The notes beneath the pieces were generated by a model. That model did not search any database and was not told where the DNA came from. It worked only from the letters and a program-made list of their open reading frames with translations. Position numbers and translations under genes: made by a program. This document shows, piece after piece, positions 12,152 to 51,200 of a stretch of DNA of 64,000 bases (within the stretch, counting starts at the first letter, position 1; each line of letters starts with the position of its first letter). Source of the DNA: Amphiscolops sp. MND2022 (lineage: Eukaryota); contig OZ076413.1 of the NCBI GenBank assembly GCA_964187785.1, forward strand, positions 25,792,001 through 25,856,000, in the 5' to 3' direction.

Positions 12152-12154
<3 letters not shown>

Positions 12155-12196
<42 letters not shown>
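12155..12196. repeat. (AG)21 microsatellite inside the ORF1 remnant of LINE E
   Basis: Perfect AG dinucleotide run. Confidence 0.95.
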
Positions 12197-12199
<3 letters not shown>

Positions 12200-25076: not shown

Positions 25077-25102
25077 ATTGTTGTGATAAACTTATTAAAT
25101 AG
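25077..25102 (+). other. Spliced-leader-like motif directly fused to the ORF1 ATG of LINE G1
   Basis: ATTGTTGTGATAAACTTATTAAATAG immediately followed by ATG at 25103. Confidence 0.75.
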
Positions 25103-27270: not shown

Positions 27271-28165
27271 GGTATTGATTACAAGACCAAATTTTTTCGC
27301 GCTTTTTCAATGCCAATGTGAAAATTTCGCTACGTTGAGCTGGAATCAAAAATTCTGCGAATGTGACCACTGATAATGTTCCGTTTGTACGTCATAGGGG
27401 CAGATGCTCTGACTGATAGTGATGTTCCTGTTTCGGTAGTCTTCGAATACTAACCTGTAGTAATTCTTCCACTGTTTGTTCTGATGTTCATGTCCAAAAA
27501 AGGCGATGTTCTGTTTTCCGGATCTTTCAATTGTAAACTTTAAATTAGGATGAAGCGTGTTGATTTTTTGCGACAGACCATCAATCTCGGATGTTCTTCC
27601 TGATTTAATTATGTCGTCCACGTACCTGGCAAAGAATTTTGAACGACCAGAGTCAGTTGTCTCGATCTGATCACACCCACAAGACCATTCGGAGTCTCAC
27701 CCGATGTCTTGATCTCGTTCAGAGACAAATTGGCATTTCCTGTGGAACCAACGATTGCAGGTGTCGCATTGTATTGATGAAACAGATGACAAAACCTTTC
27801 TACTGCAATTACCACAAATGTAATCTAAATGGGCAGTTAATGTAGCCAAATCACAATCTAACCGCATTTCGAACGATTTCACCCATATGTTCGCTAGAAT
27901 AACGGCCATTGACGCATTGACGCTCCCATCGCCACTCCGTCTTTTTGAACATTCCAAACGCAATCAGCTAGAAACCTTTACGTTTTTCACAAACAAAATC
28001 AACAAGACGTTAAAGGTGGAACGGGACAAATCTATGTCCTTTTTGTGACGAAACAAATGATTTACAGCCATGTCGATTGCTTCATCAACAGGTACAATTG
28101 TATACAAACCTTTTACGTCTAGCGAAATACTTTCGTCGTCTTCATCTAGAGTAACAGTGGTTTAT
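27271..28165 (-). mobile_element. Penelope-like (PLE) reverse transcriptase fragment with an embedded PHD finger
   Basis: Motifs in order: SLDVKGLYTIVP; QKDGVAMGAS/MAVILANIWVKSFE; CGNC..CDTC.RWFHRKC..WSCGC; ARYVDDII; INTLHPNLKFTIE; IAF(L)DMNI. This series is characteristic of PLE RTs. Frameshifted. Confidence 0.85.
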
Positions 28166-29539
28166 ATGGTCCAATAATAGCTCCTATAAAATCTTTTTTA
28201 TCGAATCGGAAAGTCAGTATTCAAGTCAATGATTATATCGACATGTCATTTGTCCCTCTTAGTGGTTTATCTCAGGGGGCTGTACTGTCACCACTTTTGT
28301 TTATATTCTATATGAAGGGCTTCCTCCAAGATGCAGACTTAACATATAAGTATTCAGATGACAGTACTTCTCTTTCCAGCAAAGAAAACCTAAGTACATC
28401 TTTAGAAAAGGCGGAAAACTATACATACAAATAGAGGCACGTGCTGAATAAAGACAAAACTGAACACATAAAGTTCTCAAACGAAGTATTTCGGTCCGAC
28501 TATAAATTTGTTGAGAGAAGTAGAATATTGGGCCTATGGTTTGAGCGAGAATTGAGTTTGAAAACACATGCTGCCATTATCTCTGCCTCAGTGGCTAATT
28601 TCTGGAAAGAAACTAATTTACTTATAACGCAAAGATTAAATCCATTTTACGCTGTCCGTATCTTTGATGCAAATGTGAATCCACGTGTAGCGTACTGTAT
28701 GATTACTTGGTTTCATCAAAACAAGACACCTCCGGACAAGATATGGTGGAGTGTTCATCAATCTATCTTTGGGATAAGAAACCACCAAGTATCGAAACAC
28801 GTAATTAGTGTTTTGAGTAATATTTGGCCTCCTTCTTTTTTTTTACACTAATCAAGTATTAAAGTTTCTACATTCAACTGCTAGAAGTGCAGATATTCTA
28901 AACCCAGGTAATTTAGCAATCATACCCCAACATATTAATATGGTGAGATTGTTTTTGGTACACAAACTTTCAGTTGTAAATCGTGATCCTGATGAAATTA
29001 AGGCAAAAACCATACTAATATGCTAGAAAATCCTCAGTCAAGACTTTTAGGAAGGAGGTGGAGGAGTATTTTAGGCACTTATGGCAACGAGAAACAAAGC
29101 AAAGTCTTATGTACTCAAATTTTTTCAGGGATCAAAGTAAGAAACAGCATCATGAAAATGCTAGCACCATATCCTAGGAAAATTTCTGTCAAAATGCTAT
29201 GTTTTCTATTGAATGATTTTGAAGTACGAGAAGTATTATTCAGAAGTAATAAGAGCAAAACCGATATTCGTCCCTATTGTAGAGTTGTCGATGATACTGC
29301 ACATTTCTTATTTTCCTGTGTCTTATACCAAGAACACCGAAGGAGTTTCATAAGGGAGCGTAAAAATCAAAAAATTGACGAAACGCTAGTTACTTTGCTA
29401 AATTGCGAAAACAAGCATGTCGTAAGGGCGGTGGCTGGCTTTATTGCAAGCATCGATAAATTCTTATAACCCTGCAATCCTCAGTTGCCTTCCTTCTGTG
29501 TCAATTCTGTTATGCTATTTTCTCCGCAGCTGACTAATT

Positions 29540-30110
29540 CTTGACAATTATGGGAATAAACTCTTTTAGCGTGTCTTCTAAATCTTTTCAAGATGTTTCA
29601 AATACGTTTTTCTCATCGTACCATGAAATACATCGAAGAAAAAGTAACTTAGCTTTCTCAACAACGGGCAAGATTTCTGGTTCCAAACCAGAGCATTCGT
29701 TGTGGTACCAGGAGTCGCAGGTGTCACATTGTACCCATTTCTCGTTTGGCCTTTCTTCGTTCTTGCATTTTGCATATTCGTTAGCATTGGAGGGTGTTTG
29801 TAGGCGTCCCTGTGTTTTAGTCCTTTTGACATTAGTCCAGTGATGTTCCAGTGGACCCGTAACGATTAATGTCCGAAGCTATTCAAGAAGTTTATAATTA
29901 CGAGCTGATCCGAGGGTGCATTCCTTCGTATTCGCTCCAAATGAAACTCAAAACAGAACAACAATTGATCGAGAGCAATACGACAGTCGGATATCGTTGG
30001 GGTTGTAAATAAGAATAAAAGCGGCTTATTGTATCCATGTTGAAGGCAAGCACAGCGGAAATATGATGTCCAGCTTGGCACCGGTATAAAGATGACAATC
30101 TATATCATCT
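29540..30110 (-). mobile_element. 5' fragment of another PHD-ORF1 LINE ('H')
   Basis: Minus strand reads EKWVQCDTCDSWYHNECSGLEPEILPVVEKAKLLFLRC at about 29630-29745; its CACTGGAACATCACTGG tract also occurs in the family A 5' UTR at 38122. Confidence 0.65.
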
Positions 30111-30339
30111 TAATTTTTTTATTCTATGTTTTTCCTCTATCAGATATCATGGATCTTCGTCATCAATCAAGTGCCATGTATATCAGCATGTTGGGGGGAG
30201 AAGACACACACCCGCGGTGTGCAACGAAAGTGGGGAACCACATACCAGCCACTATACCAGTAGACGAGTAACAATAAAAACAACCAACAAACTACTCAAA
30301 CCAGCCACTAAGCAGTCGACCGGTAGAACTTTTTATAAG

Positions 30340-32950
30340 CTGCTATGATATAAAGGTCAAAAAATTTAGGTTATATGTAATAAATTTCTTCGAACGCATC
30401 TCTGTCGCTAACAATTCTTAGAACACAGGCCGCATTGCCGATCTGAAGAGCCATTGAAATCCGTTGCTTCAAGAAGCTGCCAGCTCGTTGATCGTCGTGC
30501 GAACGATAGAGCATTTTACAGAGACGCGTGATGAAAATTTCACTGCTCTCGCCTAAAGAAACCTGTACTTCCAAGGCCACCGGCTGAAAAATGTAACCAT
30601 TGTCTATTAATTCGCGATACCTCTCAATTTTACGCGCTTCAGCCTCGGTGGCGGTGGTTCCCGGGTTGCATAAAGAACCTTGATTCAGGCAACTTGGTGC
30701 AAGAGCATCCACAATCGTGACATCCCACACCAGCTGTTTACCCATTTCCCAAGGAACCATGGTAACACCGTCTGAGCGTTTGTCAGCTGTTCGGTACAGT
30801 CCACGCGGTTCGATTATTGAAGGCAAGTCGAGAGATCCCAACGTCTGCTTTATGAGAGAATTGAGAGTAGCATGACGTGAGAAGCGACCAGCACTCTTGG
30901 TGCAAGAAAGACCGTGTAAACCGTCCCGTTCAACTCTTTTACCACAGTGGCACGTATGCGCAATGCAGATGTTGGTACCGAGACGCAAACCAATTGAAAT
31001 TCGATGTTGTTGATCATCAAGTTTCAGGCCTAGGTTCTTGCAAGGAACGATGTTCAGCCATTGAGACCCGAATTTACCTTGATGATCGTGGCAAATTTTC
31101 GAACGTTTCTCATCAATTCTAGAAATCAAGTCTTGGGCGGTTTTGACGAAGACAGGTTGTGTCCAATTTTTCTGGGTTCCATCGAGAAGACTTTCCTGTT
31201 CATTCGTCAAACTCAACCATTTCTCTAGAACTTTTGTAAGTGAAACATCTTCCAATGTTTCCGAGAAAATCGCCGTGAGAAAATCACTCGCACCAAAAGC
31301 TGAGCTGAGGCCAAAAGGCGGGAAGTGCTAATAATGATGCGGATGAAACCCCAAGACCACCCATCTCAGCAGGCAGAGCCAGCTGAGTACTCGAAATATC
31401 GTCGATGTTCACGTTGCACACTTTGGAAAGCTCGTCGCGGACGGTTTTGTCATATTTCTCCAAGAGAGTTGGATGATTAAAATATGTACTGGTTCTCAGG
31501 AAGTACAACAACTTTGGCAAACTGAAGCAATTTTTCAACATAATAGAACAATAGTGCGCATCTAGTTTTTCGACAATACCGTTAACTTTTTCCAGTTCAA
31601 TAATTTTCTTTTCCAAAAGGTCTGCTTGTGATTTCGAGCCGAGCGGTGAACCAAGAAAGATAAGTTCATCTTTCTTTGCTGTTTTGATCCCGGAGCAAAG
31701 TTTTTGGAAAGATGCTAAAATTGTCGATCGTCTTTTTTCAGTGATGTCACCAGGGAAAAATTTTCACATTTCGTGGGTTTAATTTTGAGTCCCAGCGTTC
31801 TTTCGGCATCAATATTTTTTTTTGAGATCTTTCCAAACGGTTCGGCAATCATCACTTAAATTTCCATCGTCTAGATACCATAAGTTTATTTTCGACTCCA
31901 AACTGTCAATCAGATCCTGAATGGAATCCGAAAACAAAGCAGGAGACTCAGGATCTCCTTGCTGGGTCCCTTCACAAGATTTGATTACTCAATCACCGTA
32001 AAAAAGAAAACTTGGCTGACTGTACGCCGAGTGTGAATACTTATAAACTTCAGGGTGTATTTCAAAAACTTTCTCTAGCATGAATTGCCGGTTTATCGAA
32101 TTGAAAGCGTTTTCAAAGCCAATTTTCAAAATTACGTTTTCTTTGGGCTTAGGGCTTTCTATCAAACAACGGAAAACATGTGAAGCCAATTGGGTAGACG
32201 GAAGTCAGTCGGAGGAACGGGATCGAAAATCAGAGTTAGTCCTCAGGTCGACATATCAAATTTTTGAATGGGATCGAAACAACTCGCATCGAAATTTTTA
32301 CAACGTAGTAAGGCAGTGTACGCCTTTGATCTAATTGCTCGGGTCTAATGGAAATAGATCTAACTGTTAGGTCTAACTTTCAGATCTAATTTTATCTAAA
32401 AAACTTAGGTCTAACCCCTTTATGATCTAATATGTGTTCTGAAAGCGAAAGTATAATGTGGGGGATATGCGGTGCATGCACGCTCGCCCTCACCGTCGCA
32501 GAGACCAGCTCCCACTACCATCGCTTCGCGATCTCCGTTCCCGCTAGGTCTTTGCTCCTGTTCGACATCGCGTAGCAAGATGTGCATATAAGCGACCCCA
32601 AGGGGCCGCGGGGCTCTAGAGGAACTAGGGACATATCCGAGGCACGTTTATACTTTATCTCACTTTTTAGTTTTAGATCCTAATTGACTATTTTTTTTCT
32701 CAAATTAGTTCAAATTAGAAGAAATTTTTAGAACTGATTATTTAAATCAATTTATTTAGATCTCAATTTTGCCCCCTCTCTTAGATCTATTCGACCTTAT
32801 TACAGCCACCCAGGCCAATTCAGCGTCCCTTTTGGTGCCTACACCTACTTGTCGATTTCCATATCTTGCTTGACGTGATTCGAACACATGGTATCCGGCA
32901 CATTTTGCGGACAATCGGCGGAAAGTGTTGCCTATAGCGATAGGACGAAG
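30340..32950 (-). mobile_element. CRE-clade-like non-LTR retrotransposon (RT, CCHC knuckle, restriction-like endonuclease), 5'-truncated and decayed
   Basis: RT LRPIAIGNTFRRL (about 32900-32945), QVGVG, FENAFNSINR, GTQQGDPESPALF, WYLDDG; ORF 30371..31255 has CHC...HGLSC, RH, KRSDG, WDVT, AEARK..RY and QRISMALQIGNA, the RLE signature. Confidence 0.9.
32192..32811. mobile_element. Composite Mutator-like MITE inserted in the CRE RT
   Basis: TSD AAGCCAATT (32183-32191) vs AGGCCAATT (32812-32820); ends GGGTAGACGGAAGT... and ...TTACAGCCACCC; interior filled by a second, TAGATCT-rich element; excision restores RT ...DAELASHVFR. Confidence 0.85.
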
Positions 32951-32957
32951 TACTCCA

Positions 32958-32985
32958 TAATTGTTGTGATAAACATATTAAATAG
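32958..32985 (+). other. Spliced-leader-like motif directly fused to the ORF1 ATG of LINE G2
   Basis: TAATTGTTGTGATAAACATATTAAATAG then ATG at 32986; upstream flank is unrelated CRE sequence. Confidence 0.75.
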
Positions 32986-35900
32986 ATGATATATGGTGGT
33001 GTGCCGATAAGAAGAAGCCCTAGTGGATTTCAGAGATCGGCCGAAGATGACGCGGGGGGATTCACAAGGCAGAATGTACAACAAATGACGAGGCATCTCA
33101 AAGCATTTGCAAGAAATGTGATGTGGAGGTCCTAGATGGTCAATTAGCAATGTTGTGTGACATGTGCTCTATATGGTTTCATGAAGAATGTTCGGGTTTG
33201 TCCAAGAAGCAATTAAATGTCATCGGAGAGATCGACACCTGCAAGTGGTTCTGTGGTTGGTGTCTGGACAATGTGGATGATTGTCTCAAGTGCGTGTCTA
33301 ACAGTCTAGGAATGAAGAAGGATATCGAAGATATAAAAAGATTAGTAACCTCGTTTAATACCAATAAACCCACTTTTGCATCCAAAGTTTTGGAAAACCC
33401 TCCCACTAGCGTAAATGAAACTTGCACTGATAATCGTAAATATCCTGATGAACAAACACTGTACATTTCAGTCACAATAGATGATGATATTCTTTCTTCT
33501 AGTGTATTACAAAAACGGAGGCTGTATACTCATTTCCCCTGTATCAAACAGGATTTCAATTTTACCAACAAGCTTGGAAAGATTGTACTATTATTTAACA
33601 ACAAAGGCTGTTGTACTAGAGTGAAAAACAAATAGTGTTCGAATCTTCTCGGGACAGATACTAGAGTGTTTTCACCCAATGAAAGCAGATCACATAGGGG
33701 TATAATCCGAGATGTGTCGGTTGAAATTTCCACTGATGACATCAAGATTGTTTTAGCTGGCGAAAAAGAGGAAGAATTTCGAGTGATCCGACATATCAAA
33801 GGCGAAAAGGCCATACCTTTAGTGGAACTGGTTTTCCAGAAAGAATGCACATTTAACAAATATCTTCAAAATGGAATTACGCTAGAGTATATGTACTTCA
33901 AGATGGACCCAAAACGTACCAGCAAACGGATTATTCATTGTTTCAACTGTCAACAATGGGGTAGTCATGTATCCAAAATTTGTAAAAACTAATCATGGTG
34001 TGCCATCTGTGGCTACGAGCATCCAACAAACCGTCATAAAGAATATGTATGCCAGGAACAACATGAACACACAAAAGATTGTATCCCACCAAATGAAATC
34101 TATTGTGTGAATTGCGGCAAGCATCACACAGCTTTTGACCAAAACTGCGAAATGTACCAGGAATTGTGGAAAAAGTTGAACAGAGTCAACTCGTGGTGAA
34201 ACAATTTCTCTTAGCTATGATTATAAACATTGCTGGTCTCTCCACTCACTCGTGTATTGCTATGGATAAATATATAAACGACAACAACATAAAAGTTATT
34301 ACGATCTCTGAAAGCCATTGAAAGATTCAGGGTTTTGGAAACTACGATATCTACCGCGCCCATTCAAACAAACTTGGTTGCTCCTAGCTCATACACAGAC
34401 AATTAAACGCCTATGAAGTGAAAATAACACCAGAGAAGGCGTTGATTGCTGTGTTGCTGCAATTTCTACTGGAAAGAGCAATTTTTTGCTGGGATCAATA
34501 TACGTACATTTAGGAAACACTGAAAACATCGAAAGCGCCACAGATGTCCTGACTGAAGTGTATACGTTATGCAAAAATGAAAATATAACCGGACCAATAT
34601 TCTTCGGGGATTGGAATTCGAGGCATCCCTATGGGGCGATAAATTAGAAAATAAATGTGGTAAATTACTTGCCGACTACTGTGCCGACAATAGTTTTTCT
34701 ATAATAAGCCCTCACCAGCCCATTTTTGTCTCAGCAAGCAAGCAAGGTAGCAGCATAATCGATTTTTGCATCACTGAACAAAAGTGCTCTGATCTGGTAT
34801 GCAATGCACTAGTGATCGAAAATATCGAATACTTCTCTGGTGCTCCAGAGCAAGGTCATTGGCCTGTTCTATTTGATATAGATATTGCTGTGAAATATGA
34901 TAATCCTAAACGGTGGGTGCTAAACTACAAAATGGCAAATTGGGAAGAAATAAGTATACAACTGGAAAATATTATGGTGGAAAACATGGATATCACGATA
35001 ACGGAAGCAAGTACGAAAGCTCTCCTAATATTTATGGACCTAGTGAGAGGTGTTTGTGAAAATTTGTTTCCACGTAAAACAGTTTGTAAATATTCCAAAC
35101 CATACTGGAGCAATAAATTGACTCACTTATCGAAAATACTGAAAGATTCACGCAAAAAATACAGACTCCAATGTAACCCGAAAAACAAGAACATTGTTGA
35201 AATGGCTAAAATCGAATTCAAAAAGGAAATGAAAAAGAATAATGTCCGTTGGACGCAAATTGGCATTATGTAAATGAATGAGGATTTTTCGATAATATCC
35301 GCAAACTCAATGGCTCAATGGACCTAAATAACATAGGAGTACTTCGTCACAAGGGTAAGACACTGGAAAAGGATTGCCATAAAGCTGCGCTCTTTCAACG
35401 TATTTTCTTCGATGGTGCACACTTTACTGGTAAACTAATTGACGACGCTTTTTATGAAAAAACAAAAGAAGAAGTGAATGAAAAAGTAGCTCACACCGTT
35501 GGGGATTATTACAAGGAGGAGGTCAAGGATGGTCTAAACATGCGTATTACAATGGATGAACTTAAACAAGCCATAATGAAAATGAAGACAAACAGCAAGG
35601 GCGTGGATCCTTATGGCCTTCATTCTAAACTAATGAAGAACTTCAAATTTAACACCATTAACATAGGTTAGCACTTGATAAACAGTGCATTCTTCAAGGG
35701 GATTTGGCCATTCGATAAAACCATAGTCAAACTCTTGAAAAAGTCTGGCAAAACTGAATATTTTAATCCATCTTCATGGAGACCTATTTCACTTACATCC
35801 CATTTGGGAAAGTAGTTGAACGACTGATAGATAGAAGACTAAGATCATCAGCTATACTCGACATTGATGAGCAATAATTTGATTCTCAGCCAGGCAAGTC

Positions 35901-37346
35901 AACTTTGCACTATTTACACAAATTATAACATGATATCTTAGCAATGAAAAATTTACCAATAGCAACAGTATAAGATCTAGAGAAAGCTTTTGGCTCCGTA
36001 GATCAAATTTTTTGCTAAGCAAGCTAATAAACAGTGGTTTAAATGGGCCAATGTTAGCTACTATAAAATCTTTTTTATCGAATCGGCAAGTCAGTATCCA
36101 AGTCAATGATTTTATCGACATGTCATTTGTCCATCTTAATGGTTTACCTCAGGGTGCTGTACTGTCATCACTTTTGTTTATATTTTATATGAAGGGCTTC
36201 CTCCAAGATGCGGACTTAACATATAAGTATGCAGATGACAGTACTACTCTGTCAAGCAAAGAAAACTTAAGCACATCTTTAGAAAAGGGGAAAAACTATA
36301 CATACAAATGGAGGCAGGTCCTGAATAAAGACAAAACTGAACATATAAATTTCTCAAAAGAAGTATTTCAGTCCGACTATAAATTTGTTGAGAGAAGTAG
36401 AATAATGGGCCTATGGTTTGAGCGGGAACTGAATTTCAAAACACATGCTGCCATTACCTCTGCCTCAGTAGTTAATTTCTGGAAAGAAACTAGTATACTT
36501 ACAACGCAAGAATTAAATCCATTTTACGCTGTACGTATCTTTCATTCATATGTGAAACCACGTGTAACGTACTGTATGACTATATGGTTTCATCAAAATA
36601 TGACATCTCTGGACAAGATGTGGTGGAGTGTTCATAAGTCTATCTTTGGGATAAGAAACTACTAAGTATCGAAACACGTAGTTAGTGTTTTAAGTAATAT
36701 TTGGCCTCCTCCTCTACTCTACACTAATCAAGTATTAAAGTTTCTACATTCAACTGCTAGAAGTGCAGATATTCTAAACCCAGGTAATTTAGCAATCATA
36801 CCCCAACATATTGATATGGTGAGATTATTTTTGGTACACAAACTTTCAATTGTAAATCGTGACCCCGATGAAATTAAGGCATTATACAAATATTATGCTA
36901 GACAATCCTCAGTCAGTACTTTTAAGAAGGAGGTGGATGAGTATTGCAGACACTCATGGCAACGAGAAATGAAGCAAGGTCTTATGTACTCAAATTACTC
37001 AGGGCTTAAAGTAAGAAACAGCATCATGAAAATGCTTGCACCGTATCCTAGGGAGGTTTCTGTCAAAACGCTACGTGTTCTAATGAATGATTTTGAAGTA
37101 CGCGAAGTAATATTCAGAAGTAAAAAGAGCAAAACCGATATTTGTCCTTATTTTAGAGTTGTCGATGATACTGCACATTTCTTATTTTCCTGCGTCTCAT
37201 ACCAAGAACACCGAAGGAGTTTCATTAGGGAGCTTCAAAATCAAAACATTGACGAAACGGTAGTTGGTTTGTCAAATTGCGAAAACAAGCATGTTATAAA
37301 CGCGTTGGCTGGCTTTATTGCAAGCATGGATAAATTCTCATGGTAA
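32958..37346 (+). mobile_element. Decayed full-length LINE 'G2' (I/Jockey-group-like)
   Basis: Leader then ATG at 32986; PHD (33123..), knuckle CFNCQQWGSHVSKIC, APE (GDWN, SIIDF, GHWPV), RT WRPISLTSHLGK, DLEKAF, GLPQGAVLSSLLFIFY, YADD, C-terminal CCHC-like region to the stop at 37346. Confidence 0.9.
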
Positions 37347-37470: not shown

Positions 37471-37576
37471 TGAATCCACCTAGTTGAAAGAAAACACGTG
37501 GCAGATTTTGTCGAATTTATCTTTATAACGTAGTCAGCGTATCATTATAACATGTCATATAGAGTACCCCTCGGAT

Positions 37577-37920
37577 GGGTGGCTGTAAATAGGTCGAATT
37601 TTTCTGGTCGAAAGGACAGAGGTCGAACCTTTTGATCGAATTGCAGGGATCGAATGGAATGCGGTCGAATTTTATCGTTTTTGTTGTATGGCTCGGTCGC
37701 TTCGCTCCCTTCGCCAAGTAGCAACATTGAGGCATGGCCATATGGCACGTCGCTCCGCTTCGCTCCTGCATTCAGGGCACTAGGGGTATGTGAACATATC
37801 TGACTACGTTATAAACATTTCGATCCGAGTTGTTTCGATCCCGTTCAAAAATTTGGTATGTCGACCTGAGGACTAACTCTGAATTTCGATCCCGTTCCTT
37901 CGACCTATTTCAGCCCACCC
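37577..37920. mobile_element. Mutator-like MITE (compact family member)
   Basis: TIRs GGGTGGCTGTAAATAGGTCGAA / TTCGACCTATTTCAGCCCACCC; TSD CCTCGGAT (37569-37576, 37921-37928), 8 bp or 9 bp depending on how a C run is assigned. Confidence 0.9.
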
Positions 37921-38038
37921 CCTCGGATATGTCCCCATTTCCTCTAGTGCCCTGAGGCCCCTTGGGGCCGCTTATATTCCCATCTTGCTAAGCGAGGTCG
38001 AACAGGAGCAAAGACCTAGCGGGAACGAAGATCGCCAA

Positions 38039-38069
38039 GCCTAATTGTTGTGATAAACCTAATAAATAG
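38039..38069 (+). other. Spliced-leader-like 31-mer at the 5' end of LINE A
   Basis: GCCTAATTGTTGTGATAAACCTAATAAATAG begins exactly where the upstream MITE fragment stops; ends in AG and is not followed by GT. Confidence 0.75.
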
Positions 38070-38235
38070 GGAAACCGGTTTATTAAGTCAACTTCAGATT
38101 CAATGATATAATACCTGGATCACTGGAACATCACTGGGCACTGGACAATTGAACTGGACCCTTGCTCTGTGACGGTCAAGTCCAGCAAACCATCAATCGG
38201 CAAACTGTTAGTTCGTTCCATTTACCATTTACCCT

Positions 38236-38823
38236 ATGGTTTATCTAATAGGAGCAAGTTCACTCTATCGAGTCTTTAATTCTTCACCTTACTCTTTCAG
38301 ATCTACAATTTATAAAAAATCTACAGCCATCCCTGGATTATCCCTGAACCCAAATTCAAACAATAGATTTAAAGATCTTGGTTTCTTACTGGAAAGAGGC
38401 CAGTTGAGAGATAGAACCGATCTTGTTTGTTGGCACGACGTTATTAATAACAGTATTACAGAACATAAATCAAACGGAAATAAAGCCCTCACCGTTGAAC
38501 AGCTTTTGCCGATCCTGAAAAAACATTTCCATAAATTTGCTGCTATCATCTACTGGCAGAGATTCAGCACTCCCAACATTCTCGAAGAACTGCGAACGCT
38601 AAACATCCTTATCATCGACGTCAAGAAAAAATTTCTGTCCAAGCGCAAGCAGAAAACACCAAAAATCACCTCTGAACTACAAAATGTTCACCCCTGGCCC
38701 GAATTGGAGCGCAACTTTATCACCACTATCCTCAAGAAATCCACAGATCTCTACAGCCTAGTTCTACAGAAAACCCAGAAAAAAGAAGAAAGCCTAATTG
38801 AAAAGTTAGAACTTTTTCCTTAA
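38236..38823 (+). CDS. ORF0 of LINE A: intact 195-aa SGNH/GDSL-hydrolase-like protein
   Basis: VYLIGASS resembles block I (GDS), AIPGL block II, WHDVINNS block III and NVHP block V; homologous remnants at the same position in LINEs E, F and A'. Confidence 0.65.
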   Translation: MVYLIGASSLYRVFNSSPYSFRSTIYKKSTAIPGLSLNPNSNNRFKDLGFLLERGQLRDRTDLVCWHDVINNSITEHKSNGNKALTVEQLLPILKKHFHKFAAIIYWQRFSTPNILEELRTLNILIIDVKKKFLSKRKQKTPKITSELQNVHPWPELERNFITTILKKSTDLYSLVLQKTQKKEESLIEKLELFP

Positions 38824-38896
38824 TTCTTACTTAAGAGTACGGCGACAGCTTTTGAGGTTTAGTTACCTTGGAGTATTTGTCGTGCACTTAGGTAAG

Positions 38897-40227
38897 ATGC
38901 CATCCAAAAACAAAAAAGACCGCACAGTATCAGCAGCAGATCAAAACCCGGACGACTGCGGAACTTGTAACAATGCAGTACTATCTGGAACAAGTGCCGT
39001 CGAATGTGCTTCTTGCGTGCGCTGGTTTCATCAGAAATGCACCGAACTCGCTGAAGAAACTATTAAAGCGATAGATGGTTACAAATCGATTCAATGGTAC
39101 TGTAATGATTGCCTGCACTCCGTTAGAAAATTTCTACGCCCTAAAGGACTGGAAGCAATAGACCAAAAACTGGATACACTCATCGAGTCAAACCGACAAC
39201 ACCAAAAAAGTCTCTCGGCAACAATAACCAAAGTTGACAACGCAACAAACGTTACAACTGTTTCAACGGAGAGTATCACGAAACTTTCCAATGACTTGTC
39301 TGCATTATTACCAGCAATAAACAAAGTTGCACACGGACTTGCACCCAAAATTAGCTCTGTCAAAGACGCTGTTGAGAAAATGACGTCAACGTATGCCACA
39401 GCCAAAAATAAAGGAGCAGCAATACAAACAGAAACGTGCACCATAACAACCAAACCCAGAGATGTCAACGGAGTTCTCATTATCGAGAATGCACATCCTA
39501 CCTTCAGAAACAGCTCTGATATAAAAAGAAGCTTCCCCAAAGCCTTCCCCAAAAAGAAACTACTATATGCCTTCAGAACCACCAGAGGGCATATCCACCT
39601 GGAATTTGAAACACACGATGAATCCAAAGAGATTGAAGATGCATGGCGGTCAAACTTCTTGGGTAAGGACACGGTCTGTCGCAGGCCAAGAACGCTTCAG
39701 AAAAACTTCTCAGTCATAATAAAAGATGTCCCGAAAGAAGACAATTTTACAGACACAAACATATCTTCTTCACTACAAGCAAACTTCCCTGGAGCAAAAG
39801 CTAGAAGATTCATTAAGAGAGACAGCACCATTCTGAACACAGTGAAAATAGACTTCAGGTGCCATAAAGACATAGAAGCCGTAGTTAGAGACGGTTTGTT
39901 TCTAAATGATCAGTTCTTTCGTGCATATGAATTTGAAGAAGAAGTGAAAATCCCAATTGTCCGATGTTATAACTGCCAGAATTTTGGACACATAGCTAAA
40001 ACTTGCAGAAGCCCCCAAAATGCTCTAACTGTTCTGGACCACACAGCACAAGTGAGTGCGACAAAACGAAAGATAGAAAATGTGCGAATTGTCAATCAAA
40101 TCACTATGCTAATGACCCCAACTGTGAAGCATATCTGAATCATGCATCGAAAGTGTACAATCAAAAAAACATTCCGATACCAAACTACCTTCAAGATAAA
40201 TTACACTCGCTCAAGTGGAATGGCTAA
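38897..40227 (+). pseudogene. ORF1 of LINE A: N-terminal PHD finger, coiled coil, central domain, three zinc knuckles; one frameshift near 40015
   Basis: First ATG 38897; CGTC..CASC.RWFHQKC..WYCNDC; CYNCQNFGHIAKTC, CSNCSGPHSTSEC, CANCQSNHYANDPNC; stop TAA 40225-40227 overlaps the ORF2 ATG at 40220. Confidence 0.9.
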
Positions 40228-43026
40228 CAAAAATTACGCTAACATCCTGCAGCTTAACGTAACCGGCATGTCATCTGCCAAACAATTACTTCTAAACAAA
40301 TACATAGACGACGCCGGGGCAGATTTCATTGCACTGAATGAAACAAAAAAGGAATTACCTGAAACTTTTTTCATTAACCATCGAACTTTCTCACAACAAC
40401 AAACACACAACCAAGGATGAGTCTCTCTCTCACTACCAAAAGAAACAAGCTGCTTTGAGATACACGATCTCCAGAGTAAGAATTTCGACTCCGTCTGGTG
40501 CGCAGTAAATTTTCACAACCTGTCTTTTCTGCTCGCAACTGCTTACATCCCTCCCATCGCAGACACCAAAATGAAAGAATTCCTCAGCACTCTTGACAAA
40601 GCGAGATCCTTGGCAAAATTGATTAACATGGAAGGTGTTCTTTTTGTTGGGGATCTAAACGCCAGGAACCTACTGTTGGAAGACATCCGAAACAACTCCA
40701 GTGGCTCACTTCTGGAACAGTACATCGAGGAGGAGAGTGTTGAAATCCTGAATGATGGGCAACCAACGTTTTACTCAATCAACGGAAGTTCAGTAATCGA
40801 TCTATTCATGACAACGGAAGAGCTTTGCGGAAGGAAAACAACAATGTACACGGATCTCGACACAGAACTTCTCACTGGCTATCCGAACAGGGGACATGTC
40901 CCAGTGTTTGCTAATTGGGAACTCAACCACTCATCACAGGACGGAAAAGTCACCAAATTTGATCCCGAAAATACTGACTGGCAAAATTGGCAGAGTATAT
41001 TGGAAGAGAAAATGAACAGCTTTACGGACCCAAACAACCTGTTGTACAAAGACCCGAACGTCGCTTGGCGGAAAAGGAGATTCATTCTTGAAGAAGTGAA
41101 TCAGTTATGTCTCAATACGAAAGTCATCAGTAAGCACAGCAAGCCATTTTGGACAGATGTCCTGACACAGCTTAGCAACAAGGTCGGAGCACTCAACAGA
41201 CCTTCAAAAGAACTTCGACACTGCAAAATCATGCCGCATTGACATCAGCTAGACTTCGATTCAAACAAGAACTCAGAACAGCGGCATCTAACTGGACTTC
41301 TTCCAAACTCAAAGAAATAAACAATGCAAAACATGGTATTTCATTTTGGCGAAACATTCAGAAGGTATTCCCCAACAAAAAAGACCACATGGTAGCCCCT
41401 TTGAGATCACAATCCGGACTGTGTTTCGATGAGCCAGATAAAGCAAAATTACTGCTCAACACGTTTTTTAGCGGTAGCCATCTGAAAGAAGAAGAATTTG
41501 ACGGAGAGTTTGAAAACCTTGTGGATGATCAAATGCGATATTTTGATTTTTTAGAATTTACAGACAGTAATGCGTACTCCAGCTTATGGTTCAATGAAGC
41601 TGTTGAAAGACATGAACTGGACGAGATCATTGAAAAACTACGAAACCTGAAATGTAACAGCGACGATGACAAGATCCAGCCGAAGATGGTCATCATATCT
41701 GGAAATAAATTCAGAACCTGCCTAATCAACCTCTTCAACTCTTGCCTCAGATCTGGAGCCTGGCCTTGGACAGACACTCGCGTTTTTTTCATTAAGAAAC
41801 CCATGAAAGCTGACTACAGCAACCCATCTGTCTACAGGCCAATTTCAATCAGCAGCCATATAGGAAAAGTCTTCGAAAGAATACTCAACTGACGTCTAAT
41901 GCGCTACATGCTCTCTGAAAAACTAAATGCGACCTCCTAAAGAAGAGCAAATTATGTGCAGCTCTCATAAATCTAGACTTAGAGAAGGCTTTCGATAGCG
42001 TTTGGCACAATGGCCTGCTGCTGAAGCTATGGACAGCAGGAATACGAGATTCACTCTTTAATCTCTTTCGGAATTTTCTCAAATGCCGATTGATACGAAC
42101 AAAACTGGATGGAGTGTTGAGCTCGCCCATTAGGCCAAAACAGGGAGTTCCGCAAGGAAGCGTACTCTCACCATTGCTTTTCATATTTTTCATCGCAGAA
42201 ATGTTGAAGAATACTGATGGGACTAAATTCAAATATGCGGACGTTTCTCAGATCCTTGTGTCTGCGGAAACACAAGCCTCCCTCTGCAAACAAATTCAGA
42301 AGAACTTGAATTCGGAGAAAACATGGTGCAGCACATGGCGAATTCAAATAAACGGATTGAAAACCGAGATAATGCCCATTCACCCACTGGATATCTGGGA
42401 CCACAAGTTTCATCTGGGAACAGAGAAATGCGAAGTCAAATACCAAACGAAAATTCTCGGCTTGATCGTAGACAACGAATGTTCATTTAAACAACACACA
42501 GATTCAACAACAGCACGTTGCCTGAACGGGTGGAGAGAACTGAGATATCATTGCACAGGCAAATGGGGTCTATCGAGACACACCCTTACAGTTATGTACA
42601 AAACATTGATCCTATCGGCCTTACTATACTGCACACCTGTATGGGCGAGTCAAAACATTACTAAATTAACTAATATTTAACATACGATTACCCGCAGCAT
42701 AATGGAAACCAGATACAATGCAAACTCGGCAGCAGCTGAAGTTCTTTTGGGTATTCCACCCATAGACATACTGTGCCAAAACATATCATCGAAATTTTTA
42801 ACTAAAGTTCTACAAAGTAATGATCATATGACAAATCAAATAATAGAAAATGGATCAGACTTAGCGTTTCTTATGAGCCATAGAAAGACGTTGAGACAAT
42901 TTCACGGCAGAAAGACATTAAACCTACGCGACAAGCTAAGCTACGATGAAGAAACGAGTAGAAATCACATTCTTAGGCAATGGAATTAAAGATGGCAATA
43001 TCCGGACTTCGATACAAATCTCAAAC
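40220..43026 (+). pseudogene. ORF2 of LINE A: APE endonuclease and reverse transcriptase, disrupted
   Basis: ILQLNV, FIALNET, GDLNA, SVIDL, GHVPV; YRPISISSHIGKVFERI, LDLEKAFDSVWH, GVPQGSVLSPLLF, YADV instead of YADD; stops at 40418, 41890 and 42678, and a deletion removing the QxGFR motif. Confidence 0.9.
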
Positions 43027-43226
43027 NNNNNNNNNNNNNNNNNNNNNNNNNNNNNNNNNNNNNNNNNNNNNNNNNNNNNNNNNNNNNNNNNNNNNNNNNN
43101 NNNNNNNNNNNNNNNNNNNNNNNNNNNNNNNNNNNNNNNNNNNNNNNNNNNNNNNNNNNNNNNNNNNNNNNNNNNNNNNNNNNNNNNNNNNNNNNNNNNN
43201 NNNNNNNNNNNNNNNNNNNNNNNNNN
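43027..43226. other. Assembly gap (200 N)
   Basis: Run of N. Confidence 1.
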
Positions 43227-45343
43227 AGTCCTTGAGGGTGCTCGAGGCCAAAAGTTTAGTCGCATTTTTTCGCTGGTTTCTTTTGGAAGAACAAATTTAT
43301 TTCTTCTTTTGCTTTGCTTTAAAGGGTTAAAATCTTTGCATATTTACATCATATTGACCATCAATTATGTTTGATAACATCATCAATTCCTTGAGCTTGA
43401 TAAAATAAGATATAGATAAAATTCTCAGGGTTGACAATCTCTGTTTGTAGTCGTCTCCTTATATGATCCATCTGGTCACTCTAGAAATAAACTTTTTCAA
43501 TATCCTCAATTCTGATTTTTTCGGACACCAAAAGTCTGAACCGAACAGTAGGGAAGGAATGACCATGGATTTGTATACTGGCAGCTTCGACTGAGTTGAT
43601 GTATTTGATGCAGAATTTCTTCTTTCCATTCGATAGACTTTATGAGCTTTAGATAGTCTTGTCTCCAGGTGGTTGTTCCATTTCAAGCTATTTATAACGG
43701 GCCCTAAGTCCGCACATACATCCGTACAGTTCTGGCTCAAAACCTAAAGATCCTTTGAGAATGAGATATTGGCACTTTTAGGCATTGAAAAAAAACATAT
43801 TGCGCTCACTCTAAGTTTGAAGTTGGCATAATTCAGACTTTAAACGATTCGCTGGGTTGTTGGGTCCTGTGTACAAGGAAAAAAGGTATTCGGCAAACAG
43901 GTATCATAAGAAATATACAATATTATTCGGTAAGTCGTCGATAAATAACACAAAAAAGAATAAACCAAGAAAAGAACCCCGAGGTACCCTTTTTTCAAAT
44001 TTACTGGGTTCAGATAAAGCATCATCAATTTAGATCCCCATATAACGATTACAGAGATATGATTCAAGGAATTTATGAAGTTTGGAGTCGAGTTTTTTTA
44101 TTTGTTTGTTCAAAAGAAGGTCGTGTCTGCTTGTATCAAACGCCTTTTGGAAATCGAATGAGAAGAGTGTAACGCATTCAACATTCTGAATATTGGAAAA
44201 TATCTCACTTAGTGTCACCATCAGTCTCAATAATAGTGATCTACCAGTTCTGAAACCATATTGTCGTTCCTGCATATGGGGGTGGGTTCTAGATGTCCAA
44301 TAATCGCTTCAATATAATCTCAAAAGTTTTGCTACCAATGTTTGACAAACTTATTGGGCGATAATTTTCCACTGTTTGCTGCGAACCTTGCTTGAATACT
44401 GGAATCACTTTGACTTCCTTCCATTTCAAAGGGAATAGAGTATTTCGAACAATTTTAAAATAAACGTTGTAGAGCGAATGAATAAGTGTATCTGCCGTCC
44501 TAACATGCCATATAGGGGGATAGCATCATGGCCAACTAACTTCACTGCAATTTGATTTATCTCATCTCTGCAAATTTTCAAGTCGAAGGATCCCGATTCA
44601 GTGTATTTTGGCATTGTTATTGCACTGGTTTCTCTATAAATAGTTGCAAAGTACTTCAATAGTAAATTAGCTCGTGCTTTAGACCTTCTTGCAGACTCAT
44701 CCCTCCATTCTAGGTGCGGCGAGATGACAGTGCGCTTTAGCTATCTGAAGTGTTCAAACATTAAGGAGCCATTTTCGGAGGCAAAGACCTTTTCTTGATA
44801 TGCAGCGAGATCTTCAGCAATTGCAATATCAATCTCTTTTTTTTTCTTGGGATTATAACGATTTCCCTTTGAAATACTGTTTGGTTGTTTCTGATACACT
44901 TTTTCGGCGGTGGAGAGTCTATTCATTAAATTCGAGGTACCAGGTGTAATCCATGGCGGGGAGATTTCTTCTGTGTTGCGTTCGCCCTGGGTGGTAGAAT
45001 CCCGCTTTTCAGGAAACCAAGCATACCATTCTTCAACTATTTGGTCACAGTTGCTATAACATTTGGCCATGAAAGGTTGTTCAATCAAAAGTGCATTCAA
45101 CATGTCGTAATCACATCTGTTGGATTAATAACTGATAGGAGAAAGTGGGCTGGATTGGAAATCATGTCGAGTAGATAGCAAACTAACTGCGAAAGTTATG
45201 GCAAAATGAACTGATTTTCACAAGAATTCATAAATTCGCTATTGACTCGTGCAGCGTCTACATAGTCAGGGTCATTGACAAACGCAAGATCCAGAGTGTT
45301 CCGCTTGGTGGTGAAGAAATCTGTTACTTGTGTAAGGTTGAGT

Positions 45344-45700
45344 GGCTTGCTATATAGAGATCGAATTTCCGAGGTCGAATTGAATGAGGTCGAACGAAAA
45401 GAATTCGACTACTTTAGTTGCATTACACAGCTCGAACGAACTGAGATCGAATTTGGTAGAACACGTCAGGTCGAAGTTTGTTATCCCATTTCTCGAATGG
45501 AAACAGCATTGCGCAACCCCGTATGTTTTTCGTAAAAGAATATAAAGTCAAGACTTCGATCCCAGACAGTCGCTGTATTTCCGAAATTTTCGCAATTCGA
45601 CACGATTAAGTTGATCTTTTTCCGGAATTTTCACTGGTCGACCCGAGGACGTACCCTAGTTTTCGGCGGCCTGGTGGATTCGATCCGTATCCGCGCACCC
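45344..45700. mobile_element. Second copy of the Mutator-like MITE in LINE B
   Basis: Same 9-bp TSD AGGTTGAGT at 45335-45343 and 45701-45709. Confidence 0.85.
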
Positions 45701-46884
45701 AGGTTGAGTCTATCCACTTCATCCAAGATCTCCTGTTCATACAGATCACTTGAAGTCATTGAAACCCAATATTTGTCTTTTTCATATTAAAATCACCCGT
45801 TATCATCTTGCAATCAGCTGTATGGTTATTAATGGCTTGAAAAAAGGGGGTCAACTCGTTTATAGGTAGACGGTACGTACTTTTATCAAGTGGTTTGTAT
45901 AAAAATCAATACAAATTGTTTTACTGTGCAGTTTTATTAACGCTGCAGCCGCACATGAGACTTGTATTTCAGTGGGTAAAGTGTCTGGGGAATACTTGAG
46001 GTCTTTGTGGATTCCTATTAGAACTCCACCATGGGCAGTTGGGTTGGGTTTGCTTTCTTTTTCTGCTCGCATTAGGCTATAATGGGGTAAATGAGTTTCG
46101 CCATCCATTATTACCTTTCTTAGCCATGTTTCTGTTAAAAGGCATATGTCTGGCATGTATTGTAGATACAGGTGGAAACAATATGACGTCTATCGGCTAA
46201 GTATATACGTTGGCAATTGAATAATATAACTTCTAGCATGGTATGTAGTCAATCATTTCGTCCAGCTTGGATCTCATTTCCATCCTTTAACAGTTTTAGA
46301 TTTCTTGTCTTCAGCTGTTGTCGTTGAATTCCAGAATCGATAAGCTCTTTGCTTTTAAATAGCAGAGTTCTTTCCACTTGTCTTTCCTCATATGTTAGTG
46401 AATCCGAATTGAATATTCGTTTTTCTGGAAAGTTTTTGTGCTCAAGTGTCTTTGCTAATATTTTCCTCACATCCCATGGGTTTTTGAGCGTCGCAATTAA
46501 TGATCGTGGTCGCTCTTTGAGAGGATCAAATTTTCCAAACGTTGAATTCCGATAACAGCTGGATTTTCACTGAGGAATTCCATGATACCGTTCACTTTTT
46601 TTCTTCGCAGTTCAAAGTTTGTTCTTGCTCTTTTTTGGCCTCGAGTATACGTTTATTTGTAAACAAGTATCTTCTTCCTGGAAAAACGCTTTATGAATGA
46701 TTATTCCTGCGCTTGAAAATTGATGTTTGACAATTTCCTCGTTACACTCTGACATATTTTTTGATAATTGCTCAATCTTGTCATGAAGAGGTTTTATAGA
46801 TGCTTCATTAGTCGAATCAACACATTCCTTAATGGAATCAATAAAAAGTTAGGTCCCACATGGTTGTTGTAGATCATACTCGAC

Positions 46885-47710
46885 CATGAATTTAATTGCA
46901 ATATGCGTTATATCGCATGCGAGAGGGATATATTGCACGTTTTTTACAATAACGATGTGTGAAATTTTGCTATCGCAATCTAAGCAATGCGATATATTTA
47001 TATTTTCAGCAAAAACTGATATATCGCATCATGTTTCTGCGATACTTCGCAAAAAGCGATGAAAATGCGTTAAATCGGGATTTAGTAAACCGGCGTTTCG
47101 AAGACCAGCGTATCGAGTAAAATACACCGAGACAATTGAGAACTTTTTTTGAGAAATTTCGGCATCAACGTGAATAGGAAGAAGTCTGTAAAATCATGCC
47201 TTTGTTGTGTTTTTTTTCAGACATATGAATGATTTCGAGAATATAATTTATGATGACTTTAGCAATATCACTGATGAAGGGAACACAACTGACGATAGTG
47301 TGTTAGTCACAGGTTCAAATATAATGTCGCCAATTTGCATATGTTATCTGTCCATGTGCGTATTGTATTGTATTGTAACGTAACATGCTTCATTGTCGCA
47401 TTTGCAGTCTTAGGTTTATTGTTGTTGTCAAGGTTGTCTTATCAGTTGTTTAGTTATTCAGGCAAGCTCAGCGGTATCCAATCGAAACTTTGATATATTA
47501 AAGTCCTTTTTTCAAAAAGTACGAAGCGAGCTTGAACTTTTGATATTTTAGAGGTTTAGCGTCTAAAGAGCGATAAATCATTGCAATGTTTTCAGAAAAA
47601 GGGATAGCGATAACGTTAACTTTTACTGAACTTCGCTTTGGCTGCGATGCGATGTTTTTTAGAACACTGCGATAGCGATGTTTGAAAAAAGCAATGTATC
47701 TAAATCCTTG
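46885..47710. mobile_element. Second copy of the hAT-like element in LINE B
   Basis: Same 8-bp TSD TACTCGAC at 46877-46884 and 47711-47718. Confidence 0.8.
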
Positions 47711-48225
47711 TACTCGACCAGTTGTAAACAGGAATCGCAGAACCATAGGCATCCTTTGATTCTTCCGAGATGGGGGTACACTACTTTCGTCACGTCACTA
47801 CAGGCCAGATGGAACCAGTTCATGAACTTTGAGCACTGTACTGCATGAGAGTTGTCGGACACACTGGTTGTACATTTTCCACAATGTGGGTTTTGCTAGG
47901 CAAGCGTCCCCGTCCACGTGTAGCATGTATTTTATCTCAAATCTATTAAGTATTTATTTATGGTCGGGGAAGCGGAGAGTCATCATTGTTCTTGCCAATG
48001 CGAAAAAGATCCTCGATTTTGACTTTCACATTTAAACGAGTTTATTTCACATTGACAAATGAGTTTATTTGACTAATCTCGTGTCCATTATTAGATGTAC
48101 ATTCTCTTTTCCTTCAGGAATGCCTGTAACCATTATATCGTAGTCACAGTTATTTTCTTTGTTGGTAGAACTTCTCATTGGCGTAGCTCCAGGTTGAGAA
48201 CGGTTACTCTCAAGGGATATCGTTG

Positions 48226-51200
48226 GCTTCGATTGTTGTGATAAACTTATTAAATAGATGAGATATGGTGGTGTGCCGATAGGAAGAAGCCCTAGTGGAT
48301 TTCAGAGGTCGGCCGATATGACAGGGGAATCACAATGCAGAATGTACAACAAATGACAAGGCATCGCAAAGCATTTGCAACAAGTGTGATGTGGAGGTAC
48401 TAAATGGTCAATTGGCAATAATGTGTGACATGTGCTCTATATGGTTTCATGAAGAATGTTCGGGTTTGTCCAAAAAGCAAATGAATGTCATCGGAGAGAT
48501 CGACGCTTGCAAGTGGTTGTGTGGTTGTGTGGTTGGTGTCTGGACAATGTGGATGATCGTCTCAAGTGTGTGTCTAACAATCTAGAAATAAAGAAGGACA
48601 TCGAAGATATAAAAAGACTAGTAACCTCGTTTAATACCAATAAACCCACTTATGCATCCAAAGTTTCGGAAAAACCTCCCACTAATGTAAATGAAACTTG
48701 CACTGATAATCGTAAATATTCTGATGAACAAACACTGTACATTTCAGACACAAAAGATGATGATATACTTTCTTCTAATGTATTACAAAAACGGAGGCTG
48801 TATACTCGTTTCCCCGGTATCAAACTTGATTTCACTTTTACCAACGAGCTTGGGGAGATTGTACTATTATTTAACAACAAATACTGTTGCACTAGAGTGA
48901 AAAACAAGTGGTGTTTGAATCTTTACTGGACAGAAACTAGAGTTTTTCCACCGAATAAAAGCAGATCAAATAAAGGTATAATCCGAGATGTGCCGGTTGA
49001 AATTTCCACTATATATCAAAGGCGGAAAGGTCATACTTTTATTGGAATTAGTTTTCCAGAGAGAATGCACAATTAACAACTAACTTCAAAATGGATTTAC
49101 GCTAGAGTATATGTTTTTCAAGATGGACCCAAAACGTACCACCAATGGATTGTTCAATGTTTCAACTGTCAACAATGGGGTAGCCAGGTATCCAAAATTT
49201 GTGAAAACCAATCGTGGTGTGCCATCTGTGGCTACCAGCACCCAACACACCGTCATAAAGAATATGTATGCCAGAAAAAGCATGAACAAGCAAAAGATTG
49301 TATCTCACCAAATGAAATCTACTCTGTCAATTGCGACAAGGATCACACAGCATTTGATAAAAACTGCTAAATGTACCAGGAAATGTTGAAAACGTTGAAC
49401 AGAGTCAACTCGTGATGAAACAATTTCTCTTAGCTATGAGTATAAATATTGCTGGTCTCTCCGCTCACTCGTGTATTGCTATAGATAAATATAAAAACGA
49501 CAACAACATGAAAGTTATTAGGTCTCTGAAAGTTATGGAAATTATCTGGGTTTTGGTAACTACGACATCTACCGCGGCCAGTTAAGCAATCTTGGTTGCT
49601 CCTTCCTCATACACAAACAAATAATATCCTATGAAGTGAAAATAACACCCAGAGAAGGCGTTGATTGCTGTTTTGCAGCAATCTCTATTGAAAAAAGGAA
49701 TTTTTCGCTGGGATCAATTTACGTACATTTAGGAAACAGTGAAAACATCGAAAGTTCCACAGATGATCTGGCCGAAACGTATACGTTATAGAAAATTGAG
49801 AATAAAACCGGACCAATAATCTTCGGGGATTAGAATTCGGGGGATCCGCTATGGAGCAACAAACTAGAAAAGAAATATGGTAAAATACTCGGCGACTACT
49901 GTGCCGACAATAGTCTTTCTATAATAAGCCCTCACCAGCCCACTTTTGTCTCAGCAAGCGAGAAAGGTAGCAGCAAAATCGATTTTTGCATCACTGAACA
50001 AAATTGCTCTGATCTGGTATACGATGCACGAGTGATCGAAGATATCGATATCTTCTCTGGTGCTCCAGAGCAAGGTCATTGGCTTGTTCTATTTGATATA
50101 GATATTTCTGTGAAATATGATAATCCAAAACGGTGTGTGCTAAACTACGAAATGGCAAATTGGGAAGAAATAAGTATACAACTGGAAAATATTATGGTGG
50201 AGAACATGGATAGTATGATAACGGAAACACCTACGAAAGCTCTCTTAACATTCATGGGCCTACTGAGAGAAGTTTGTGAAAATTCCATTCCACGAGAAAC
50301 ACTTCGTAAATATTCCAAACGATACTGGAGCAATAAATTGACTCACTTATCGAAAAAACTGAAAGATTCACCCAAAAAATACAGACTCCAATGTAACCCG
50401 AAAAACAAATACCTTGTTGAAATGACAAAAGGTATTGATTACAAGACCAAATTTTTTCGCGCTTTTTCTATGCCAACGTGAAAATTTCGCTACGTTGAGC
50501 TGGAATCAAAAATTCTGCGAATGTGACCACTGATAGTGTTCCGTTTGTACGTCATAGGGGCAGATGCTCTGACTGATAGTGATGTTCCTGTTTCGGTAGT
50601 CTTCGAATACTAACCTGTAGTAATTCTTCCACTGTTTGTTCTGATGTTCATGTCCAAAAAAGGCGATGTTCTGTTTTTCGGATCTTTCAATAGTAAACTT
50701 TAAATTAGGATGAAGCGTGTTGATTTTTTGCAACAGACCATCAATCTCGGATGTTCTTCCTGATTCAATTATGTCGTCCACGTACCTGGCAGAGAATTTT
50801 GAACGACCAGAGTGAGTTGTCTCGATCTGATCACACCCACAAGACCATTCGGAGTCAGTCTCACCCGATGTCTTGATCTCGTTCGGAGACAAATTGGCAT
50901 TTCCTGTGGAACCAACGATTGCAGGTGTCGCATTGTATTGATGAAACAGATGACAAAACCTTTCTACTGCAATTACCACAAATGTAATCTAAATGGGCAG
51001 TTAATGTAGCCAAATCACAATCTAACCGCATTTCGAACGATTTCACCCATATGTTCGCTAGAATAACGGCCATTGACGCATTGACGCTCCCATCGCCACT
51101 CCGTCTTTTTGAACATTCCAAACGCAATCAGCTAGAAACCTTTACGTTTTTCACAAACAAAATCAACAAGACGTTAAAGGTGGAACGGGACAAATCTATG

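Follow-up and report, generated by a model that had tools for sequence, protein, structure and literature searches.

The window analyzed here, a 64,000-nucleotide stretch of the acoel Amphiscolops sp. MND2022 (contig OZ076413.1, positions 25,792,001 to 25,856,000), contains long interspersed nuclear elements (LINEs), and every full-length one of them, namely A, G1, G2, G1', E and, in decayed form, F, begins with a copy of a 31-nucleotide spliced leader (SL). All six encode LINE proteins. They belong to the non-long-terminal-repeat type, with an APE-type endonuclease and a reverse transcriptase and an upstream open reading frame (ORF1), seen directly in A and G2 and by protein similarity in E, F and G1. 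Pfam gave no match on the ORF pieces of G1, and family G was classified through the proteins of G2. ORF2 of LINE A is broken by frameshifts, and the element is cut by an assembly gap at 43027-43226. The elements had originally been predicted to come from unrelated families. This holds for the DNA that follows the leader, which does not align between A, G and E, and fails for the proteins: the reverse transcriptases of A and G are 30% identical and both families have a PHD-type ORF1, so they are distinct families of one broad LINE type rather than unrelated elements.

The exact 31-mer occurs once in the window, at the start of LINE A, and its 25-base core, TTGYTGTGATAAACNTANTRAATAG, occurs five times, always on the forward strand (10835, 25078, 32961, 38045 and 48233), compared to a chance expectation of 0.01 from shuffled sequences. 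The original prediction, that the 31-mer marks the 5' boundary of LINE A and that variants of it mark those of G1, G2, G1', E and, weakly, F, was thus borne out by the five core copies and the decayed copy at F. The leaders of G1/G1' and G2 deviate from the full SL in the first few bases alone, being truncated or decayed. As had also been noted, GT never follows a leader copy in the window; the next two bases are GG, AT or TT. Lacking a donor, and with LINE sequence where the Sm-like site and stem-loops would be expected, these copies were rejected as SL RNA genes.

Table 1. Leader copies, LINEs and target repeat in the window (anti-SL, complement of the leader 3' half; RT, reverse transcriptase).
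Feature	Position	Strand	Description	Evidence
SL copy, LINE A	38039-38069	+	5' end of A; minor variant ...AAACCTAATAAATAG, present among SL RNA genes	sequence, empty-site alignment
SL copy, LINE G1	25071-25102	+	5' end of G1; exact from ATTGTTG on, first 5-6 bases decayed or truncated	
SL copy, LINE G2	32955-32985	+	5' end of G2; variant AAACATATT, present among SL RNA genes	
SL copy, G1'	48226-48257	+	5' end of G1'	
SL copy, LINE E	10829-10859	+	5' end of E; full-length but decayed	
SL copy, LINE F	10613-10643	-	5' end of F; strongly decayed (~22/31 bases), then A-type anti-SL box	
LINE A	38039-43026	+	ORF1 with PHD and CCHC (38852-40138), APE endonuclease (40571-41242), RT (42090-42680)	
LINE A, first 26 nt	38070-38095	+	anti-SL box, slightly decayed, ending in CTTCAG, an alternative acceptor in two other A copies	
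LINE G1	25077-29464	+	PHD ORF1; endonuclease and RT similarity to G2; 88-90% identical to G2	
LINE G2	32958-37346	+	PHD ORF1 (33123-33635), APE endonuclease (34611-35273), RT (36012-36665)	
LINE E	10829-14357	+	ORF1, endonuclease and middle region 31-49% identical to A (protein)	
LINE F	4724-10643	-	ORF1, endonuclease and RT similar to A; head to head with E	
LINE A, second copy	58950-64000	-	98% identical to A; 3' end at ~58950, then the rest of repeat U	
Repeat U	37577-38038	+	target of the A insertion; other U copies continuous across the insertion point	empty-site comparison, loose ends of public-run unitigs at 38040

The 31-mer is the SL exon of the acoel host. Its sequence is identical to the published SL of Symsagittifera roscoffensis, located by full-text search with part of the motif (PMC9911081), which substantiates the originally suggested likeness to an acoel leader; in that genome paper, the leader is described as reconstructed and 30.2% of genes as trans-spliced. 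A genome-wide pattern search returned 2,499 matches to the leader, compared to 0 in the control, and many of these matches recur in tandem every 904 bp. The leader 3' half followed by GTAAGT was found at 1,207 exact sites. The SL RNA gene whose existence the prediction implied, with motif, GT donor and Sm site, is therefore present in ~1,200 copies in arrays shared with 5S ribosomal RNA (rRNA) genes. Each 904-bp unit contains, in order, the leader, GTAAGT, stem 1, in which the leader 3' half is paired with the intron, stem 2, AAUUUUUG as an Sm-like site, and a 5S rRNA gene recognized at 117 bits (Rfam). None of the Rfam models searched with the unit matched an SL RNA, and the 5S rRNA alone was recognized. 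The unit represents an SL RNA gene of the classical kind, in linkage with 5S. Minor SL variants with an intact donor are also present as SL RNA genes, namely CCTATT (n=5), CATATT (n=2), CTTAAT (n=12) and CCTAAT (n=6). The sole AG of the SL is formed by its last two bases, and the terminal YAG is preceded by CTTATT. In the SL gene, the base directly before GCC is A, and A likewise precedes 20 of the 22 full leaders among the first 30 dispersed sites sampled (p = 6.5e-9); its length is thus probably 32 nt, and reverse transcription probably extends to its first base.

Several features of the SL arrays were also recorded. Large tandem arrays of the SL RNA and 5S unit lie at L013-L030 (G000:C1:16.22-16.43 Mb), with further sites at C12:56.0-56.7 Mb, C1:15.37 Mb and C2:4.95 Mb, and the minor-variant SL genes cluster apart, on C12, on C2 and at the edge of the C1 array. 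The SL exon is interrupted in many array units (L016:2398 joined to L017:1495; L030:2399), which accounts for periods of 2,904 bp. One insert measures 2,000 bp, sits after leader base 17, has leader bases 1-17 duplicated at its flanks (17 bp) and ends in AATAAA...AAAA; another sits after leader base 13. Such inserts are possibly retroposons with a preference for the SL exon.

The leader is the first inserted sequence of the LINEs. Comparison with uninterrupted copies of repeat U placed the start of the A insert exactly at the leader, with an AGC microhomology and a loss of 22 bp of U. Independent A copies begin at (A)GCCTAATTG and have unrelated flanks, some of them showing the truncation typical of LINEs, either inside the leader or behind it. 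For family G, at least 38 further copies showed homology starting at 25077-25078, and the leader 3' half lay directly upstream in 62 of 65 G-family 5' ends genome-wide. As in retrocopies of trans-spliced RNAs, the leader has the sequence of the host SL exon, ends exactly at the 3' AG of that exon and adjoins flanks that vary among copies.

Two other origins of such a junction were considered. LINEs specific for SL genes as their target are known, including SLACS, CZAR, CRE and NeSL-1, and the leader could accordingly be target or bystander DNA, acquired by insertion into SL sequences in the manner of NeSL, SLACS or CRE, or by a template switch onto SL RNA of the U6-L1 type. Within the SL/5S array, SL exons interrupted by insertions are indeed found, and one A copy (L034:1490-1501) sits directly after a partial leader ending at base 17 (TTGTTGTGATA), the same break point as that of the 2-kb array insert. 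Against this, the window copies comprise the whole exon to its exact 3' AG with no SL intron, the elements do not have SL-gene halves on both sides, the second half of the SL gene being absent after them, and the flanks before the leader are unrelated to the upstream region of the SL gene. A template switch onto SL RNA would have brought part of the intron too. Both variants were rejected on these grounds, and we regard an origin as target or bystander DNA as very improbable. The second origin is technical: the leader might have been written into the assembly from RNA reads, as the published S. roscoffensis assembly was polished with RNA-seq reads (PMC9911081). However, the assembly used here differs from the published one in size and contig number, the leaders of old copies have decayed in step with the copy, and the same junction is found in dozens of diverged copies. 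Moreover, in unitigs of public runs, which are DNA-like contigs, leader bases 5-31 are continuous with the body of A, and this speaks against an artefact. A polishing artefact was rejected, its likelihood being negligible. In the same public runs, repeat U and its neighbors (37500-38050) reached a summed contig depth of 1-3 million, compared to a few hundred for LINE A, and are thus part of a repeat of extreme abundance.

Leaders outside the SL genes are widespread. At least 642 exact leader 3' halves (last 20 bases) whose next base is not G are distributed across the chromosomes, equally on both strands. We closely inspected the first 30 of these 642 sites, which correspond to 28 distinct loci. 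The leader was full in 22 of the 28 and short of its first bases only in the remaining 6, and most of the sampled loci combined a full leader with unrelated flanks. The sequences after the leader formed ~15 clusters, and similarity to LINE ORF1 or endonuclease was detected in at least 14 of the 30 sites (Pfam, and tblastn with A and G proteins). Genome-wide, the leader heads hundreds of LINE copies. The ORFs of two families left unclassified by these searches, L062 and L072, gave weak Atlas leads with scores below 0.9 (PHD and FP-type ORF1-like clusters). Two further loci carry other kinds of coding sequence. At L077:129-1208 (minus strand), a leader without its first three bases precedes an ORF that spans at least 360 aa and encodes an eIF2A domain (E = 1e-42); this is a leader-tagged retrocopy of the host eIF2A gene, and it may be intact. 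At L083:129-1010 (minus strand), a 5'-truncated leader precedes an ORF with DUF1759 (E = 8e-37), which we take to be BEL/Pao gag-like, suggesting that the mRNA of a long terminal repeat (LTR) element was trans-spliced and then retrocopied.

Two side observations concern the dispersed leaders. Short tandem arrays with a unit of full leader plus LINE 5' part are found at L035-L037 (C6:14.340 Mb, period 1,252 bp), L069/L070 (1,842 bp), L087/L088 (2,003 bp) and C2:89.877 Mb (1,382 bp). In many families (L063, L071, L072, L078, L089 and others) TTTCAG or TTTCCGG directly follows the leader, making T the commonest base after dispersed leaders; this start could be a second acceptor.

Three results favor addition of the leader by splicing at each round over a single ancestral acquisition. 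First, the junction varies within families: in two copies of family A the leader is joined 27 nt further in, at a point preceded by CTTCAG in the full copies, and in eight copies of the L062 family it is joined 27 nt downstream, directly after TTTTCAG. Second, variants of the SL genes are mixed within families. The leader of the window A copy contains CCTAAT and that of its duplicate CTTAAT, and other A copies, 94-97% identical, have the major leader form or single substitutions of it. Similarly, the leader of G2 contains CATATT, that of E contains CCTATT, and CTTAAT is found in at least five G copies, with sister copies showing the major form. Third, the eIF2A retrocopy shows an SL-tagged host gene. 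On the strength of these three results we favor trans-splicing before retrotransposition, and they support the original proposal that the host SL is written into the genome with the LINE RNA. After insertion, the leader decays together with the copy: G-copy leaders are ~6% diverged (counted on the listing of 65 ends), matching the 87-91% identity of the copies to G1, and the leaders of E and F are strongly decayed.

Alternatively, the leader might have been captured once or a few times by ancestral LINEs and inherited as part of the 5' untranslated region, perhaps serving as an internal promoter that starts at its first base. Hannon and colleagues reportedly found in 1990 that the SL exon of the Ascaris SL RNA gene acts as such an internal promoter, with transcription starting at its first base. 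Such a capture fits the fact that all full-length A and G copies start with the leader and that no source copy bearing an outron was seen; a box that follows the leader in several families and rebuilds stem-loop I of the SL RNA could, moreover, mimic the 5' region of the SL gene. A promoter role has also been proposed for the leader relict of dinoflagellate retrogenes (PMC5585692). Capture does not, however, account for alternative-acceptor junctions inside single families, for differing SL-gene variants on near-identical copies of one family, or for the presence of the leader on the eIF2A retrocopy and on families that are unrelated after it. We consider it unlikely.

The box mentioned above is a complement of the leader 3' half placed 3-30 nt after the leader, which we term the anti-SL box. 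A genome pattern search for the leader 3' end followed by N(3-30) and TTTAATAAGT gave 80 matches at ~75 loci, compared to 0 in the control. The spacers vary by family and, with the adjoining bases, give short loops that are mostly UGCG, CUCG, GAAA, GCAA or UUCG, all stable tetraloop types. In the L062 family a 14-bp hairpin is predicted across the splice junction (z = -3.5 relative to shuffles). The first 72 nt of the window A copy did not fold better than shuffles (z = -0.78), because the anti-SL box of that copy is decayed. The predicted hairpin is like stem-loop I of the SL RNA but has no donor. It could dock the SL RNA beside the acceptor, mark or stabilize the mature LINE RNA, or be an imitation of the SL RNA gene in its 5' region.

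Taken together, we consider it highly likely that LINE RNAs of many families are SL trans-spliced and then reverse-transcribed to the first base and integrated, with the leader reacquired in each round. This reading builds on what was observed directly: the motif is the host SL exon, the insert begins with it, the junction varies and SL variants are mixed. Transcripts of many LINE families would be trans-spliced at an AG acceptor in their 5' region, and the capped, leader-bearing RNA would be reverse-transcribed to its very first base and integrated. Each full-length new copy would thereby start with a leader, obtained anew from whichever SL RNA serves in that round. The SL-headed copies would themselves be the sources, transcribed by read-through, and re-splicing at the terminal AG of the encoded leader would plausibly make an internal promoter unnecessary. 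More tentatively, and with somewhat less than even confidence, we suggest that SL trans-splicing might be obligatory in the LINE life cycle and replace the internal promoter, with read-through RNA being re-spliced at the AG of the encoded leader to restore an exact, capped 5' end, and with the anti-SL box, evolved in several families, docking the SL RNA or marking the mature LINE RNA.

Several points weigh against the trans-splicing of LINE RNAs before integration. First, it is deduced from DNA alone: a search for public RNA runs containing the stretch returned none, and the four runs aligned to it consist of contigs that look like DNA. Second, no A or G copy with an unspliced upstream outron was found, and the acceptor context of a source copy was not seen; the alternative junctions follow CTTCAG or TTTTCAG, and no precursor with the main acceptor was found. 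Third, the A insertion is accompanied by a 22-bp target deletion and has no target-site duplication. Fourth, variants shared within a family could partly reflect subfamily inheritance. Lastly, ~14 of the 30 sampled downstream sequences were matched neither by Pfam nor by tblastn with A and G proteins.

Two of the LINE copies in the window lie in duplicated sequence. The second A copy is inverted and runs past the right edge of the window, with its leader at window-equivalent 64401-64431; as its upstream flank is common to A, it arose by segmental duplication rather than by an insertion of its own. Its 3' end has an AT-rich stretch and an inverted duplicate, ~95 nt long, of the final coding segment of this copy (59290-59180 versus 59040-58945, minus-strand reading), which may have resulted from aberrant priming at integration. 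G1' is a copy of G1 within the 98%-identical duplication at 43227-55118. This 12-kb direct duplication (20109-31955 versus 43227-55118) begins exactly at the gap that cuts LINE A and may represent either a genuine segmental duplication or a join made in assembly.

A LINE must re-create a transcribable and complete 5' end with each jump, and the known solutions are internal promoters and 5' ribozymes. The genome described here would record a third route, in which host trans-splicing supplies the capped 5' end. The leader is in effect a built-in tag for full-length, RNA-derived insertions, both of LINEs and of host retrocopies, which makes the history of retrotransposition easy to read in a phylum of interest for bilaterian origins. 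Annotation is affected as well, in that gene models built on the SL will include LINEs. The anti-SL hairpin suggests sequence adaptation of a parasite RNA to a host RNA that it receives post-transcriptionally.

A search of the available literature on SL-headed LINEs in acoels found nothing, and the part of the S. roscoffensis genome paper available to us is silent on them (PMC9911081). The principle nevertheless has precedents and is not categorically new, while the feature itself is real and well supported. A close parallel is found in dinoflagellates, where retrogenes keep a relict of the leader, DinoSL, and where it has been suggested that the leader is re-spliced and acts as a promoter (Slamovits and Keeling 2008, cited in PMC5585692; PMC12014239). 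In both systems, trans-spliced RNA is, or in our LINEs would be, reverse-transcribed and integrated, leaving the leader at the 5' end of the copy. The DinoSL retrogenes, however, are host genes in a protist, whereas here mainly LINE RNAs are concerned, in an animal. DinoSL relicts are also often stacked and truncated, because DinoSL has an internal AG. The sole AG of the acoel leader is its last two bases, so that re-splicing would leave no relict, and none was seen.

Among animals, six leader-transposon fusions in Schistosoma mansoni were interpreted as possibly trans-spliced, retro-transcribed elements, with misassembly not excluded (PMC5832876), and a 2025 survey covering 24 parasitic flatworms excluded 597 loci at which a partial leader is joined to an LTR or LINE element, offering the same conjecture (PMC12582326). 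The flatworms thus likewise have genomic leader copies fused to LINE and LTR elements, for which the integration of trans-spliced retrotransposon transcripts was suggested. There it is a side remark, whereas the acoel, of another phylum, offers full leaders with precise junctions and alternative acceptors, leader variants that match SL genes, and an empty site. In Hydra, ~30% of transposon Iso-Seq reads carry a trans-spliced leader (PMC12220107). Transposon RNAs there use the host SL machinery, which is an RNA-level observation, and the part of the report available to us does not mention the leader in genomic copies; in the acoel it is seen at the level of DNA. R2 and L1Tc have ribozymes resembling that of hepatitis delta virus (HDV), which define the LINE 5' end independently of a promoter (PMC3185411, PMC3383444). 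These offer a working analogy only, as such elements are co-transcribed with host sequence and RNA processing sets their 5' end; they cut themselves out, whereas in the acoel the host spliceosome would add a capped leader. A ribozyme was not found in the acoel LINEs, although no search aimed at one was made. Finally, the SL-gene-specific LINEs share the link between LINE and SL, and SL-exon insertions exist in the SL/5S array here as well. Those elements target the SL gene, whereas the window elements own a complete leader as their first 31-32 bases and lie at dispersed sites. Compared to these systems, what is new in the acoel is the completeness of the phenomenon across many LINE families, the DNA-level evidence that splicing preceded integration, and the anti-SL box with its tetraloop hairpin.
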